A stretch of DNA of 64,000 bases from Aplysia californica. Its lineage: Eukaryota. The DNA lies in contig NW_004797455.1 of NCBI RefSeq assembly GCF_000002075.1, positions 1,144,177-1,208,176 of the forward strand, read 5' to 3'. Position numbers and translations under genes: made by a program. Below, piece after piece: positions 12,401-17,510 of the stretch. Under the pieces are notes generated by a model that did no database searches, was not told the DNA's origin, and saw nothing but the letters and a program-made list of their open reading frames with translations. The first letter of the stretch is position 1. Each line of letters opens with the position of its first letter.

Positions 12401-15400
12401 GGGATTAAATGTACTTTTATTTTTGGGCTGTGAATATTCTTTTATCTGAGTATTTAAGAACTGCAGAAGACAAGCATACACATTGACGTGAGTGAAAAAC
12501 AGTGGTCTTTTATCTGACTGTATTTATTAAAACTCTGAAATTGTATTTGGGCTATGGGCCTTCATTTGTGCACCGAAGAATGACGAATATTATTATTATA
12601 AGGTCAGTTTTAAAATTGCTTACTGATATACTTCATATGTTAAAGAGGCAATTTAATGTTTTCAGATTGTTGATGGACCGTGCCTCATTCCTGCTGTTCC
12701 TGCCATGCTCACCTCAATGTCTGTGGGGAAACCCCTTGGTGATCTCACTGCACCACAGCCGGTCCGAGTGCCTTTGTACCTGGAAATATCTGAGAATCGA
12801 CAAACTCTGTGCGCTTCTAGACAATACAGTTATGGCTATGAGGAGCATGTGTTTACTGAGAGCTGGGATTCATTCCTTCAGTAAGATGCAGAACTTGTTG
12901 TGAATCATAGATAGGAAAAATACTAGAGGTAGTAAAGGTTACAGCAGCTGTAAAATGACTTTGTTGTTGAAGCTTGTCGCTCTTCCAGAAGCACATAGAT
13001 CATTTTGAAGATAGTGCACGTGGCCATTTGAGAGGACACCAAACTGAGAAAAGTGTTAAAAAAATTCTTGGGGTAAAGTCAGAGAAAAAGAAAGTGTTTA
13101 TACGTCAGGATTAAAAAAGTTTTACTATACAAGTAACAATATTGCAAGCATATAAATAATAATAAGTTTAATAGAGCTTTAATTTTCCTGCTGTAGACTT
13201 GCAGAATTTTTTTCAAATCTTAAATCAAGAAATACATACATAGACTCTTTAATTCCTGAGAACTCAATCGAGGTACAGCTTTGTGTTTAAGCGTCCATGT
13301 TTGTTATGAGATTCATGAGTCTGCTATTCCCTCATCTTGGAAATTTTTGCCTTGTAATAGCAGTGTACATTAAACATATAATAAAAATGACTCGACTTTC
13401 TTTATATCCCTGGACTAAAAGTGTCTATTTTGCAATATTTTGTAACTCTTTTTTTCCTGAAGCTACCATGAATTACACCTCTTCTGCTTCAAGTGTGCTA
13501 TTGCGATTATGAAAAAAACATGGGCCTGTTTTCAAGCACAAAAAATAGGGATTTTCATGGTCTAGAGATACAGTGTTTGCCTCTCAGTCAAAAGGTCCCC
13601 GATTCGAAACCTGCCAGCAACAACAAAAAAAATCTGAAATTTCCTTCTTTGTCGTATTTTCCTGTACTCTAGTCCTGGTTTGTCTTCTGCTTTTTTCTCC
13701 ATTATTCCTCTTCTCCCCCCCCAGCTCTGGCCCCTTCTCTTCCTTACTCTTGACTCTTTTACTGCTACTCCTGGATCCTTCTTACTGTTGTCTTCTTTCA
13801 GCTACACCCCCTGATCTTAGTAGGGTAGGTCAAATCAAACTCCTATCCTTCTCAGATAAAGGTGAAAAATCTTGGAGGTCCTGTGTGCGTTAAAGATCCC
13901 TCTGTGGTCTTAAAATTGATGAATAGGCTTGGGTCACCATCCCCGCAAAATTCAAAATCAATTCGTACTAAAACTTGAAATACTCTTGACAGTATAAAAA
14001 AAGATATAGAGTAACTTCAAAATCGGAATGTGGCTGCCAAACGTGAAGGCGAGGGACCCTTTGTGTGAGTAGAAAAAAAAACGGTCGCATATACGTAAAA
14101 ATCAGTTGCACTGCAGGTAAAAGTGTTAAAGAAAAAGCAGTTGACTACCCCTGAGATCTAGCAGGGAAAAGCAAAGAAAGATGCACAGAAATGAGCTAAT
14201 AAAAGTCTGAATACTAAAAGCTGTGATAATGTAACTAGTGATATATGCGTTCTTCGCCACAGATTTCAAGAGCGGTTTTCGTCACAAGTGACTCCGATAG
14301 ACTGCCCAAGAAGCAACCTGAAGAAAGTGTTCCGTACAGAGTGTTCTAGCAGGTCAGCCACTTCAGTAACCAAGAGAAAGGCAGGTGTGACCACTGTCAG
14401 GTCAGCTGATGAATGTGATCCCAATATTCCCAGCTGGATGACCACAAAGCTCAGGAGGCAATCCACCCTTGAATCGACAGTGTCCAGCTCAGACAAAGAA
14501 GACAGTAAAGAATCTGCTAGTGTAACCTCTCTCAGGTAACCTTGAATTGCTCTGTGGCATATTCTAAACCTGACAAGTTTTTACTGTGTTCATGTCACTT
14601 TTATATACAGTCGACTCCATTTATGTTGAAGTCACATAGCTGATCTTTGGTTTGGTCAATCTTTTTCTCGGGCTCCTTGTCTTTACATATAAAAATGAAA
14701 TGATTATGTTGGATTTAACACAAACGCTTGAGTTTTAATGACTTTATACCCCCGGCTGCAAGTATTCAATGGCTGAATTGGTTGTGGTAGTGGTATTGTC
14801 AGATTAGAAATTAGTTGGTTATTTTGCAGCAAAATTTTGACATGTGTGATACTTCACGTAAAAATACACGTAGAGCTGATCGATGCAGTTGGCCTACACA
14901 GTACCTTGATGAAACAGTGAGGGGAGCGAGTGTGTTTGACACACGGCAGCTGCTTCCTGTCCCCTTAAGGCCAGAGGGCTTGGTGCGCTGCAAGATATTG
15001 AGTAGGCCTAACTGGGCTCTGTTGCAGTGCCTATTTTGTCTTAAAAAAATAACATTTAACATGCAGTGCCATTTGAATTTGATTGGATGGGACTACTCTG
15101 TGTGGGAGATCAGCATTCAGCTATAAATCTGCTGATACAAATCAAATATGGAAAATCAGTGTTTAGTATTAGATCTGCTGAAACAATCAAATGTGGCTTT
15201 GCACTCCTAGAGCTTGCTTTGTTCACTCCATCCCACCGTAGGAGGTTTCTGTACTTTGTGAGAACAGAATTTTTTAATGGTCTCTATGTGTTGAGTTGAT
15301 CTCTAGACTTACAAGCAATGTACACAATGCATCTATTTCTTAGCATGTTCTTTTACTTTTTAATAAATTTCTTTTGAAGGTAATGTATTTTTTGTGACCT

Positions 15401-17510
15401 TGGTTTCAACTTCAAGTAATGTTGAATTACAAAAGCACATTCTTTGCAACTCACAAGTCATATGAGTCATATGTTTTCTTTCTCTTCATACGGTAGTGGC
15501 AACTTTTTGAAAACTTGGCCCTCTTTATTTGCAGGTCTTCAAGAACAGTATATCTCATGACAGAAAAAGAGCTATGTAACATTGCCAGACAAGTTCTATC
15601 AGAGGTACTTCCCATGTTTGTCTGTTTACATTTGTTAATGTTCTGACTGTGATGACCATATGTAAGTCAGAGCAGTCAGTCTCTCTTACTGTAGCCTTGG
15701 AGCTAGGGCAAGGCAAGATCAGGATTTGGGCTTTTTGTGTGTTTGGCACAAGTATAGCAAATAGAAGTTTTTTTTCTTCAGTTTTGAAACTTCTGCTCCG
15801 CTTAGTCTCAAGGTAAGCAATTTCACAGGTAAGTCTAACTGCGAAATTTCAATTTCACAACAGCCGGGGCCAAAATATTCAGGTTGTGTAGTTTTGGTAT
15901 CAGAAGCTTTATGATTTATATATAAAATGAATACTGGTAACAAAAAAATAAACTGGAAAAGCCAAAAATTTCAGAGGGAGCGATAAATTATTGTATGTGT
16001 ATAATGCCCTTTTGACACTTTGCCCCCTATGGAACACCGATCAGAGACAATGTCGTCTTTCCCGCACAGGATGTCAGTCGAAAACAGTGTAACACAGCTA
16101 CAAAAACAATGGAGGAATGATCTCTCTTTAGACTTATGCACTTGTAACAGCTGGAACACTAACACTAACACCCTTCCTGAATGATTTTTGTGGCCCTTTG
16201 AGCACAGAAATCAGTAAGTTTGCAATGATTGGAGTGAAAATTTTTTAATATGTCAAGTACATTTAGTGCGAGTGCTGCTTTATAGTGTCGCTATGATAGG
16301 CGTTCGAGTGATGAATGTGTGCAAATGGCTTTAGATCCAATTCCTACTCCTATTCGGATGAGCATATATGTGGTCGTCATGTTCAATTTTCTGAAAATTT
16401 CATAATGAAATAAGCATTTTTGCTGAGATATGGGACAAGCAATCATGTCCCCCCAATTCCCTTATATTACTTATAATTCTGCTTCCTGGTACCGGCTTCT
16501 GTGGTGTAGTGGTTAGGCACTTAACAGTCACATGCAGGAGACCTGAGTTTGATTCCCGAGGGGAGGGAACTTTTATTGGGTGTCTCAGTCTTTCTGCTGG
16601 TATGTTGTATCCATCTTCGCCCAGGTTTGCCCTGACAAGCATGATTGAAGACCGTCTCCTGAATGTTCTGAACTGTGTTGATGGGGGCATAAAAATACCT
16701 GCATTTAAACAAATTTTGTTTTGGCTTCCAGGTACGTGGGGCGAAAAAGGTTTTGAACTCTGCCCTGAGTGGGGAAAGAGTGTAAATTATTTAAATTATA
16801 CACTGTAAGATTATTTTAGAACAGGGACATACCATATTTAGTCAATAGTGTATTTGGACCAAATTAAATGATGGGTAATCAGGAAAACTTGTACTGCTCT
16901 GTACAAAAATAGCTTCTGTCGTTATAAAGCCAAAGTTCATGTCATAAGAAATACATGAATACTGTGATTATCATTATGTATCACGACGCAGTGGAATCAG
17001 TGGACATTTTATAGCTTGTTCATTTGTCTTGCTTTTGGTGAAAAAACCCCCCGAATCTATAGAGAACAGAAGTCAAGATATTTGCGATTGAAGGAGGCCT
17101 GGTTTCAGAGGTAAATTAGCGAGAAAATGGCCACCAAAGTTTGGCAACTTTCAAAGCAAATTTACATTTGTGGGCCTTAAATCAACATTTTTCACTAAAG
17201 TCCACAAAGACGTGTTTTAAAATGGACAAAAATTCGATAAAAATTGGCAAACGGACAGAAAACGCCAGTTTCTTCGATTTCATTAATTTGACGAGTGCCT
17301 GGTTTCACCACGATGCCTCACATAGACTATCATAATAATAGTAATAAATTTCACTCCATTCTTTTTTTTTTTGGTATTGAGCCCAAGTAAATTTGCATAT
17401 GTATGATCTGTTCTTGCTAATATGCCTCTCAGTATAGTTTTCTCCTTTTTTTTCAGGCAGGGAGAGAGGACAGCATGGAAAAAAAGATTGAAGATAAAGA
17501 TGCTGGTTGA
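2729..17510 (+). CDS. Spliced gene (~525 aa): PNK-like P-loop pseudokinase + HAD-like pseudophosphatase + CYREN/MRI-like C-terminal module
   Basis: Exons with GT-AG boundaries and matching phases: 2729-2782, 3663-3797, 5431-5508, 6240-6417, 7111-7187, 7635-7788, 8654-8718, 10166-10288, 11184-11255, 11703-11732 (donor uncertain), 12666-12880, 14263-14535, 15535-15604, 17457-17510 (TGA). Joined protein: MDAHSTFDIIFLFGPSLPMKES...NRQVIVDG...TRKSL...EDPKPDEGF...GLLIQWEALL...LPPQPG...VYVFNDLDHMKMAQVAGV...IPSWM...RTVYLMTEKELCNIARQVL...DKDAG*. AATAAA at about 17616 and 17673. Confidence 0.8.
4866..5028. other. Assembly gap (N)
   Basis: Run of N. Confidence 1.
7635..11255 (+). CDS. Exons 6-9 of gene 1: HAD-IIIA/PNK3P-like domain with degenerate motifs
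   Basis: GLLIQWEALL at the motif I position, SLPPQPGVLAFLQSQHLLDL matching the RKPxPG...LD pattern, and TVYVFNDLDHMKMAQVAGV matching the hhVGD...D...AxxAG pattern. Confidence 0.7.
10775..10972 (+). repeat. 48-bp minisatellite, about 4 copies
   Basis: Unit CATTCATACTGCCTATTATTGTCTTTGTGGTGACGGTAGAAGGACTTG. Confidence 0.95.
13548..14180 (+). mobile_element. tRNA-headed SINE-like repeat family A
   Basis: TGGTCTAGAG ... GATTCGAAACC (A/B box-like). Homologous copies at about 23770-24150 (minus) and 43180-43460. Confidence 0.6.
14426..15604 (+). CDS. CYREN/MRI-like module: KBM-like IPSWM (exon 12) and MRI core motif (exon 13)
   Basis: IPSWM-x34-RTVYLMTEKELCNIARQVL resembles human CYREN LPSWL-x~33-RTVYCMNEAEIVDVALGIL (recalled from memory). 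Confidence 0.7.
16493..16712 (+). mobile_element. tRNA(Asp-like)-derived SINE family B
   Basis: GTGTAGTGGTTAGGCAC...GTCACATGCAGGAGACCTGAGTTTGATTCCC head. Homologous copies at about 30598-30812 and 61070-61290. Confidence 0.7.

Follow-up and report, generated by a model that had tools for sequence, protein, structure and literature searches.

MRI/CYREN (C7orf49; Pfam PF15325) is regarded as a vertebrate microprotein whose role is disputed, the protein being taken either for an inhibitor or for a stimulator of NHEJ. Its isoforms contain 157, 69 and 102 aa. The Ku-binding motif of MRI is of the APLF type, found also in APLF and at the N- and C-terminal ends of WRN, and has the core consensus R-x-x-P-x-W (Grundy 2016). 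According to published data, MRI residues 15–20 (S15–Q20) turn helical on binding, Arg11 is contacted by acidic residues of Ku80, and Met17, which follows the Trp, is the majority residue at its position and provides an affinity gain of more than 30-fold. The replacement of R182/K183/R184 by EEE in APLF abolishes Ku binding. A conserved multimerisation domain, residues 49–81, is built of a strand (53–57) and a helix (58–81). Work from 2025–26 recast MRI/CYREN as a protein that bridges Ku and the ERCC6L2 translocase via this central strand, in which T52, V53 and Y54, at the start of the multimerisation domain, bind the HEBO domain of ERCC6L2.

The locus described here lies within a 64,000-nucleotide window of the Aplysia californica genome (contig NW_004797455.1), to which all coordinates refer. 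LOC101861583 encodes a 525-aa protein (isoform X1, P0003) that is placed on the window by tblastn in 14 pieces, from 2729 to 17507. It is a single-copy gene: all 12 genome matches to P0003 fall in its own locus, and no paralogues were found in this comparison. The last 132 residues, contributed by exons 12 and 13 and the last exon, form a tail in which exons 12 and 13 encode two short motifs resembling those of MRI/CYREN. The reading that we favour, with moderate confidence, is that a PNK-like protein has in its tail a two-part adaptor similar to that of MRI/CYREN, the architecture being new. The features of the gene are the following:

2729–17640, + strand: whole gene LOC101861583, with 14 coding exons and a 3' UTR reaching to about 17640
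2729–11735, + strand: exons 1–10, the protein body (about residues 1–323), a PNK-then-HAD-phosphatase look-alike without profile match
12666–12880, + strand: exon 11, joined in frame to the exon with the Ku-binding-like motif (contigs X5 record 2 and X9 record 7)
14263–14535, + strand: exon 12, start of the Ser/Thr/Lys-rich tail, holding the Ku-binding-like motif (from translation and RNA joints)
14417–14443, + strand: D-P-N-I-P-S-W-M-T, in which I-P-S-W-M-T corresponds to the part of an APLF-type Ku-binding motif that forms the helix
14536–15534, + strand: 999-nt intron separating both motifs (joint seen in RNA)
15535–15604, + strand: exon 13, 70 nt, encoding (R)SSRTVYLMTEKELCNIARQVLSE (from translation of 15536–15604 and RNA joints)
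15542–15598, + strand: RTVYLMTEKELCNIARQVL, putative strand and amphipathic helix, equivalent to MRI 51–69
17457–17510, + strand: final coding exon, AGREDSMEKKIEDKDAG followed by a TGA stop, without XLF-like motif (from translation and an RNA joint)
17616–17621, + strand: AATAAA polyadenylation signal, about 19 nt before the longest RNA contig ends

The three joints of the tail (12880|14263, the 14536–15534 intron and 15604|17457) share the GT..AG form and are supported by RNA, each being crossed by a single contig from X5 and a single contig from X9, which represent two studies; the X9 contig ends at 17640. A Gln codon (CA|A) is split by the joint 12880|14263, the frame being read from the translations, and the translation of 14201–14539 ends in VRSADECDPNIPSWMTTKLRRQSTLESTVSSSDKEDSKESASVTSLR. 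The database protein P0001 is 99% identical to exon 12, and its C-terminus is exactly the one predicted by the exons. Among raw reads, the polyA set X21 has none at 12880|14263 and two at each of the other joints, and X22 has none at any of the three. Neither Rfam families (12000–18500) nor tRNA genes (13400–17500) were detected. The module, which had been read as a CYREN signature, is not a CYREN-type microprotein: in the RNA it is fused as the C-terminal tail of the 525-aa protein. A stand-alone CYREN gene located downstream of a separate PNK-like gene, with the fusion arising from read-through splicing or a model error, would account for some RNA contigs that extend into the intron just upstream of exon 12, where words in X5/X9 have a mean depth of 5.0/7.0 over 13956–14139 and of 10.9/13.6 over 14140–14323, and where X5 record 3 spans 14075–14223 at a depth of 5.9. 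The spliced contigs are deeper, however (18.1 and 20.6), with 12880|14263 as the main form in both X5 and X9, and NCBI models both isoforms as fusions. Moreover, exon 12 has no in-frame ATG upstream of the Ku-binding-like motif and an in-frame TGA is found at 14192–14194, inside the preceding intron, so a transcript started in the intron could not encode this motif from an ATG. We consider a conjoined transcript very improbable.

The tail is composed of S, T, K, E, D and R in 59% of its residues, which suggests disorder. This property, judged in Aplysia from composition, is common to MRI/CYREN, and both are rich in Ser and charged residues. Both also contain a P-S-W-[LM]-T core, followed 36–37 positions after the Trp by a T-V-Y strand, then x-M-x-E-x-E and an amphipathic helix, and the Aplysia protein stops soon after the helix, near the equivalent of the end of the MRI multimerisation domain. 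The placement of the module is different, C-terminal on 525 aa instead of N-terminal on the 157-aa microprotein, and the MRI motifs have been reported as conserved among vertebrates (Grundy 2016), whereas Aplysia is a mollusc.

As the first part of the adaptor, I-P-S-W-M-T would represent the core of a Ku-binding motif of the APLF type, IPSWM being encoded at 14426–14440 (P0003 residues 449–453). The human motif given for comparison in the first-pass annotation, RVLPSWL, agrees with the MRI-A peptide (residues 6–19; Grundy 2016). The Aplysia sequence matches P14, W16 and the majority Met17 of MRI, a Thr stands at T18, and Pro-x-Trp-Met is found as in APLF and the N-terminal motif of WRN. The core R-x-x-P-x-W is incomplete, with Pro and Trp present and Arg absent in D-P-N-I-P-S-W. 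The loss of this Arg had been correctly noted: its position, five residues before the Trp, is occupied by a Pro. The flank (ADECD) is acidic and not basic, and the basic patch preceding the Pro, seen in every published example of the class, is absent. The description of the motif as divergent consequently holds for its basic half, which is swapped for an acidic run, but not for the residue after the Trp, where Met is the majority form that binds 30-fold tighter.

The Aplysia Ku80 gene is found on contig C573 (E 3e-17 to XRCC5); in two exons read separately, D106, D109, D116 and L68 are kept, and Q119 is changed to E. Because the basic half of the motif has become Pro and acidic residues while the acidic residues of Ku80 are kept, the Ku-binding half would act as a weakened or altered ligand, the loss perhaps being partly offset by the Met after the Trp. 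Ku binding by the Aplysia motif is doubtful. The acidic flank fits poorly with Ku80 residues that in MRI meet Arg11, and charge reversal kills the APLF motif; both points would agree with a different motif class, or with convergence, in which IPSWM, the acidic flank and K-L-R-R-Q follow the pattern D-x-D-P-x-[IL]-P-x-[WF]-M-x-x-K-L-x-[KR]-Q and serve another partner, and only the RTVY strand-helix, if anything, is MRI-like. When exon 12 was searched with HMMER against 1.84 billion representatives, only itself and one unrelated repeat protein were retrieved, P0002, an unnamed metagenome protein matched in four stretches (E 5.9e-6), in whose sequence, read by eye, the acidic-flanked motif recurs at least six times. 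P0002 has Phe and not Trp, however, and its low-complexity repeats can inflate the score, whereas the P-S-W-M-T of Aplysia is the helix-forming core of MRI with the high-affinity Met and lies at the MRI distance from RTVY. A different motif class seems to us improbable.

The second part of the preferred two-part adaptor would be the R-T-V-Y strand with its amphipathic helix, resembling the MRI element responsible for HEBO strand addition and multimerisation. RTVY begins at residue 488 of P0003, and the whole module spans residues 449–506, at the C-terminal end. The strand-helix matches MRI at T52, V53, Y54 and M56, with Ile for V64, Val for I68 and Leu kept at L69; P40, C55/N57 and L66, the last replaced by Arg, are unmatched. 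The human central string quoted in the earlier reading is in agreement with the published T52, V53, Y54, 54-YCMN-57, V64, L66, I68 and L69. At motif level, the central TVY strand and helix of CYREN/MRI are both present, and the proposal of RTVY as the conserved core agrees with the HEBO binding of T52/V53/Y54 and the conserved 49–81 domain in the 2025–26 work. An AF2 single-sequence model places a helix at P0003 495–508, with a confidence so low (mean pLDDT 34.9) that the model is unusable.

The 34-residue gap first counted between IPSWM and RTVY persists in the spliced protein P0003. Measured from the Trp to the Thr of TVY, the distance is 37 positions in Aplysia (W452, T489) and 36 in human (W16, T52), and the CYREN-like spacing is therefore preserved to within one residue. 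When RTVY.M.E.E was back-translated and searched for in the 927-Mb genome, two copies were found (reversed control, 0), one at this locus and one out of frame inside another ORF on C111. A composition model predicts about 0.9 matches by chance in six frames for this pattern, about 8e-4 per six-frame genome when P.W[LM] is also required at the right spacing, give or take 3 residues, and 4e-6 per 10^7-residue proteome for the two motifs jointly. The resemblance of the two motifs to CYREN/MRI is real and greatly exceeds what chance would give.

It could still be argued that a disordered Ser/Thr/Lys-rich tail happens to carry two MRI-like strings and has no role in end joining. The strand pattern is expected about once per six-frame genome when taken alone, as the spurious off-frame copy illustrates, the finding emerged after a great many windows had been scanned, which entails a selection effect, and no profile, sequence or structure search ties the tail to MRI. 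The pattern is nevertheless in frame within an expressed exon, the second motif is found at the right distance with the joint expectations given above, and there are further agreements outside the pattern, namely the Thr after W-M and the hydrophobic residues at the V64, I68 and L69 positions. We regard chance as unlikely.

Regarding relatives, the Pfam MRI profile, proposed in the first-pass annotation as a check, did not bear out the assignment: neither P0001 nor P0003 was matched by PF15325 at E ≤ 10, and 0 families were retrieved when the two motif exons were scanned separately. In a six-frame genome search the profile had no match at the LOC101861583 locus, and one of three scored candidates reached E ≤ 10, an acidic low-complexity run on C1381 with 18.8 bits against a cut-off of 27 bits. 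Word-index sequence searches returned no relative, neither these nor the HMMER search of exon 12 gave orthologues, PDB contained no match for isoform P0001, and the Atlas look-alike search yielded nothing for the tail. The protein ends, as had been read, in EDKDAG*, and its last residues (MEKKIEDKDAG) contain no aromatic residue, in contrast to the XLF-like motif of MRI, in which a conserved Phe comes after a basic patch and for which the MRI-X peptide served as comparison (Grundy 2016). Human MRI2 is likewise published as being without this motif. With support at the motif level, an MRI-like strand-helix and half a Ku-binding motif are probably real features of the tail, and they may reflect either shared ancestry with vertebrate MRI or convergence.

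A possible partner for the strand-helix is encoded in the same genome: a SNF2 helicase gene of the ERCC6L2 type on C898 has an exon matching PF14773 (HEBO; E 4.2e-5, 24 bits, the cut-off being 21). The HEBO domain spans fungi to humans, and we know of no HEBO ligand outside vertebrates. The domain is stated to be restricted to Hebo/ERCC6L2 orthologues and is present in sea urchin and fungi, which makes a HEBO ligand predating vertebrates plausible. Binding of ERCC6L2 by the Aplysia tail is plausible. The strand-helix would tether the PNK-like body to ERCC6L2 and/or drive self-association. The motif match hints at an adaptor module older than vertebrates. If confirmed, the tail would provide a first invertebrate candidate for a HEBO ligand, would reveal which of the two adaptor halves is the more ancient core and would point to a connection of ERCC6L2 with the processing of DNA ends; otherwise, it would represent a cautionary case of two short motifs brought together by chance.

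The body of the protein resembles a polynucleotide kinase/phosphatase with the phage-type domain order, as judged by Atlas, which compares protein-language-model features and predicted structures. Its feature score is 0.92, a value to be read with the 4–10% of shuffled proteins that reach 0.9; 176 of 256 features are common to viral AAA_33+PNK3P clusters, and the ten best matches with a family all share one family or clan. The structure rows place AAA_33 over residues 5–171 (TM 0.65–0.78, depending on the row) and HAD over residues 174–326 (TM 0.58). The nearest Atlas proteins, of about 300–320 aa, have a kinase-like followed by an HAD-like fold, as in the T4-type PNK/phosphatases of phages and giant viruses, but the Aplysia body differs in having no PNK- or HAD-type HMM match: Pfam and PHROGs returned 0 families each, NCBIfam only two weak unrelated matches, and neither PF13671 nor PF08645 matches the LOC101861583 protein. 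Inspection by eye indicates that the Walker A stretch of P0003 (GPSLPMKES) departs from G-x4-G-K-[ST] and that there is no evident D-x-D-x-T; the body is probably not an active enzyme. A wider scenario, for which we see little likelihood, is that the ERCC6L2–Ku bridging adaptor MRI/CYREN predates vertebrates, its mollusc form being the tail of a dead phage-type PNK/phosphatase and the vertebrate microprotein a freed or independently retained tail derived from an ancestral (pseudo)enzyme of end processing, with the HEBO-binding strand, and not the Ku motif, as the ancient core. Canonical PNK3P genes sit elsewhere in the Aplysia genome: PF08645 has eight matches at E ≤ 10, six of them over the cut-off, on C126, C18, C1468 and C27, whereas C185, the contig of LOC101861583, has no match. 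PNK-type enzymes process DNA or RNA ends in repair, an activity that would suit an NHEJ-adaptor tail.

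Two motifs resembling those of the vertebrate NHEJ adaptor MRI (CYREN) are confirmed in LOC101861583 of Aplysia californica, and the coordinates given in the first-pass annotation are exact:

14263..14535, + strand, exon 12, carrying IPSWM at 14426-14440
15535..15604, + strand, exon 13, carrying RTVY...QVL at 15542-15598

Translation of 14201-14539 ends in ...VRSADECDPNIPSWMTTKLRRQSTLESTVSSSDKEDSKESASVTSLR and that of 15536-15604 reads SSRTVYLMTEKELCNIARQVLSE, each followed directly by a GT donor. In P0003, the 525-aa isoform X1 of this gene, IPSWM occupies residues 449-453 and RTVY residues 488-491, so that the 34-residue spacing already noticed from the DNA holds in the protein. 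The last 132 residues of P0003 are rich in S, T, K, E, D and R, which together make up 59%.

RNA mapped over 12300-17800, from two raw polyA runs and two contig runs, shows that the motif exons are spliced together. Three GT..AG joints were found (12880|14263, 14535|15535 and 15604|17457), all three being spanned by one 596-nt contig in X5 (depth 18.1) and by one 787-nt contig in X9 (depth 20.6), the latter extending 31 nt 5' of 12665 and reaching another exon. Expression of the tail region is low in these runs; raw reads from X21 number 0, 2 and 2 at the three joints, respectively, and X22 has none at any of them. X5, X9 and X21 come from three separate studies. The reading frame, as read from the translations, is unbroken across four exons by way of split codons. 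A small stand-alone gene was considered as an alternative, as the intron just 5' of exon 12 has weak RNA cover (depth about 5-14; the spliced form has 18-21). This intronic RNA cannot encode a free-standing version starting at an ATG, since exon 12 offers no in-frame ATG ahead of the motif, and a TGA at 14192-14194 closes the frame upstream. The joints and the single frame through four exons therefore place both motifs at the C-terminal end of a longer protein.

This protein appears once in the genome: tblastn places P0003 on the window as 14 exon pieces, the first starting at 2729 and the last ending at 17507, and all 12 of its matches in the 927-Mb assembly fall at LOC101861583, which is thus single copy. 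Whole-protein queries were the database proteins P0001 and P0003, and no hand-joined exons entered any search. Against 1.84 billion representatives, HMMER with exon 12 matched two proteins. One is P0001 (485 aa), 99% identical to exon 12 across its residues 354-445, named by NCBI “uncharacterized protein LOC101861583 isoform X2” and a cluster mate of P0003. Word-index searches retrieved only the query itself, both for whole P0001 (1 of 8000 scored candidates) and for its residues 1-350 (1 of 4835), and gave one candidate and no match for exon 12, so that neither search type found relatives for either tail or body. A PDB sequence search with P0001 had no match, the Atlas returned nothing for the tail, and a single-sequence AF2 model reached a mean pLDDT of 34.9. 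The second protein, P0002 (591 aa, from a metagenome), is the sole non-self HMMER match of exon 12 (E 5.9e-6, four stretches, window 14396-14494). Read by eye, it carries at least six acidic-flanked copies of D-x-D-P-x-L-P-x-F-M-x-E-K-L-x-[KR]-Q, whose likeness to the Aplysia D-P-N-I-P-S-W-M-T-T-K-L-R-R-Q reaches past the Ku-binding core. It has neither a Pfam family nor a name, and was judged to be an unrelated repeat protein.

The Ku-binding peptide of MRI (residues 6-19) and its XLF-like peptide are printed in Grundy 2016 (PMC4831024), which gives R-X-X-P-X-W as the minimal Ku-binding core and describes the motifs as conserved among vertebrates. In Vu 2026 (10.64898/2026.07.22.740027), MRI residues 9-14 are bound extended and 15-20 fold to a helix, and the conserved residues 49-81 form a multimerisation domain (strand 53-57, helix 58-81) that is disrupted by changes at 54-YCMN-57 and at V64, L66, I68 and L69. 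Aplysia matches MRI at P14, S15, W16, T18 and the Met that most species have at position 17, and in the strand at T52, V53, Y54 and M56; hydrophobic residues stand at three helix positions (Ile at V64, Val at I68, Leu at L69). The distance from the Trp to the Thr is 37 positions, versus 36 in human MRI. In contrast, P40, C55 and N57 have no match, L66 is replaced by Arg, and R11 by a Pro within A-D-E-C-D, so the Arg of the Ku motif is indeed absent, as had been noted. The XLF-like motif is likewise missing: the final frame, 17457-17510, translates to the EDKDAG-stop end that the annotation had described, 17 residues past exon 13 and roughly where the MRI multimerisation domain ends.

A back-translated RTVY.M.E.E pattern matched the genome twice, and its reversed control not at all; a composition model predicts 0.9 matches per six-frame genome. 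When P.W[LM] must also lie no more than three residues off the correct spacing, the expectation falls to 8e-4 per six-frame genome, or 4e-6 per 10^7-residue proteome, the further positions that agree with MRI lying outside the tested pattern. We take the resemblance of the tail to MRI as real at the level of motifs. The other RTVY.M.E.E match lies on another contig (L014, G000:C111:296477-299506), where it is surrounded by a 499-aa frame (ORF 56-1555); being out of frame within this ORF, it is attributed to chance.

The MRI Pfam profile, proposed earlier as a check, did not recover the gene: PF15325 had no match at E <= 10 on either exon, P0001 or P0003, and none at this locus genome-wide. Its sole match in the genome scored 18.8 bits (cut-off 27) and was rejected as compositional, being a run of acidic, low-complexity sequence on a different contig. 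The lack of a profile match is one of the three refuting outcomes that the annotation had listed. Intron position was given no weight; the Aplysia intron lies about 4 codons 5' of the TVY Thr, near but not identical to the junction six residues before T52 that is suggested for MRI by the first 46 residues common to MRI1 and MRI2 (Vu 2026). Judged by profile and by the full Ku-binding consensus, the feature is not an MRI family member; judged by its motifs, it probably works partly like MRI, and the earlier interpretation is partly supported overall. The literature searched gave no report of an invertebrate CYREN, which is not proof of its absence.

According to Reichl 2025 (10.1101/2025.11.28.691009), MRI bridges Ku and ERCC6L2: its R11, P14 and W16 touch Ku80 D106, D109, D116, Q119 and S143, its central strand, which contains T52, V53 and Y54, pairs with the ERCC6L2 HEBO domain, and mutation of either interface abolished its own interaction. 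The HEBO residues reported in contact with MRI are T1213-I1215, I1223 and Y1263. Both partners have exons in Aplysia. One Ku80 exon on C573 aligns to XRCC5 chains (E 3e-17) and ends at D106 in full-length numbering, with S-S-G-D plus one base; a split Phe codon and L-D-A-L-V-V-A-M-D-H-L-E follow in the next exon, the junction being read by eye and the exons not tool-joined. L68 is kept and, counting on from D109, so are D109 and D116, while I112 is Val and Q119 is Glu. The acidic residues that the published model sets opposite the Arg of MRI are thus intact, which makes the Pro-plus-acidic flank of the Aplysia motif a poor electrostatic fit. When the corresponding charges of APLF are reversed, its binding to Ku is abolished (Hammel 2016, PMC5207133). 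The Met after the Trp may compensate partly, L17M having tightened MRI binding more than 30-fold, from 7.82 uM to 218 nM (Vu 2026). Binding of Ku by the Aplysia tail is doubtful. As a control, a canonical basic Ku-binding motif was sought in a putative Aplysia APLF, represented by tandem PBZ fingers on C252: no convincing R-x-x-P-x-W occurs within about 1.5 kb on either side of them or in the 10 kb upstream, and the only P-x-W-M lies inside a 13-codon open stretch between stops.

The second partner is represented on C898 by SNF2 helicase exons (PF00176, E 3.1e-9) and, about 15-20 kb 3' on the same strand, by a PF14773 exon (24 bits, cut-off 21; E 4.2e-5). PF14773 is the HEBO domain, which Zhang 2016 (PMC4886357) describes as restricted to direct Hebo homologues and reports in sea urchin and fungi. 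Aplysia thus has the receptor domain for a TVY strand, one far older than vertebrates.

Regarding the body of P0003, no Pfam or PHROGs family was found, and NCBIfam gave two weak unrelated matches. In the Atlas its nearest neighbors are viral AAA_33+PNK3P polynucleotide kinases (feature score 0.92, 176/256 features shared), and all ten best hits with a family share family or clan; the Atlas's own P0003 model places AAA_33 folds over residues 5-171 and HAD folds over 174-326. A PNK-like body is suggested by this single kind of evidence, which has a known false-positive rate, and visual reading suggests a degenerate P-loop stretch and HAD nucleophile site. PF08645 (PNK3P) exons occur on four other Aplysia contigs and not at LOC101861583. 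BLASTP of P0003 against one genomic PNK3P frame was not significant, its best local match (E 0.7) sitting at a HAD motif-III-like S-Y-x-x-P-x-P-G. At L005 (G000:C1468:23625-24101), PNK3P profile positions 1-125 fall in one unbroken frame of 203 aa, whereas C126 and C18 have multi-exon matches; the L005 frame may represent a polynucleotide phosphatase gene that is intronless or of foreign type.

Sequence, splicing and the presence of both partners are established here, and the binding is inferred: in the likeliest mechanism, the tail would be a flexible tether. Its RTVY strand and helix would dock on the ERCC6L2 HEBO domain by strand addition, or pair with themselves, and in either case the PNK-like body would be recruited to, or clustered at, the staggered breaks on which ERCC6L2 acts. 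A weak Ku80 contact may be contributed by the P-S-W-M-T element.

The window holds several other features. In the last intron, the contig runs have mean word depths as high as 4367 and 6671 over 16900-17451, with many loose ends and internal joints, and raw-run reads at 17084-17267 are mostly on the + strand (about 91 and 113 versus 1.7 and 1.0); the stretch resembles a dispersed repeat with high transcription rather than a piece of LOC101861583. The intronic stretch 16490-16620 is tRNA-like, with an acceptor and a T-arm-like GGTTCGATTCC-type ending, and may be a tRNA-derived SINE; ARAGORN found no tRNA in 13400-17500, and Rfam nothing in 12000-18500. At 10650-11000, a unit of ~16 codons (...TAYYCLCGDGRRTCIH...) is repeated about four times and read in all three frames, an intronic minisatellite with a unit of ~48 bp. 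Two further frames are retrotransposon remains:

32114-32848, - strand, RNase H domain frame (E 2.9e-8)
61708-62184, + strand, reverse transcriptase domain frame (E 1e-12)

Finally, long CAG/CAA-type runs, read as polyglutamine, are found at 1-60 and 2464-2540, 5' of the first coding exon of LOC101861583.
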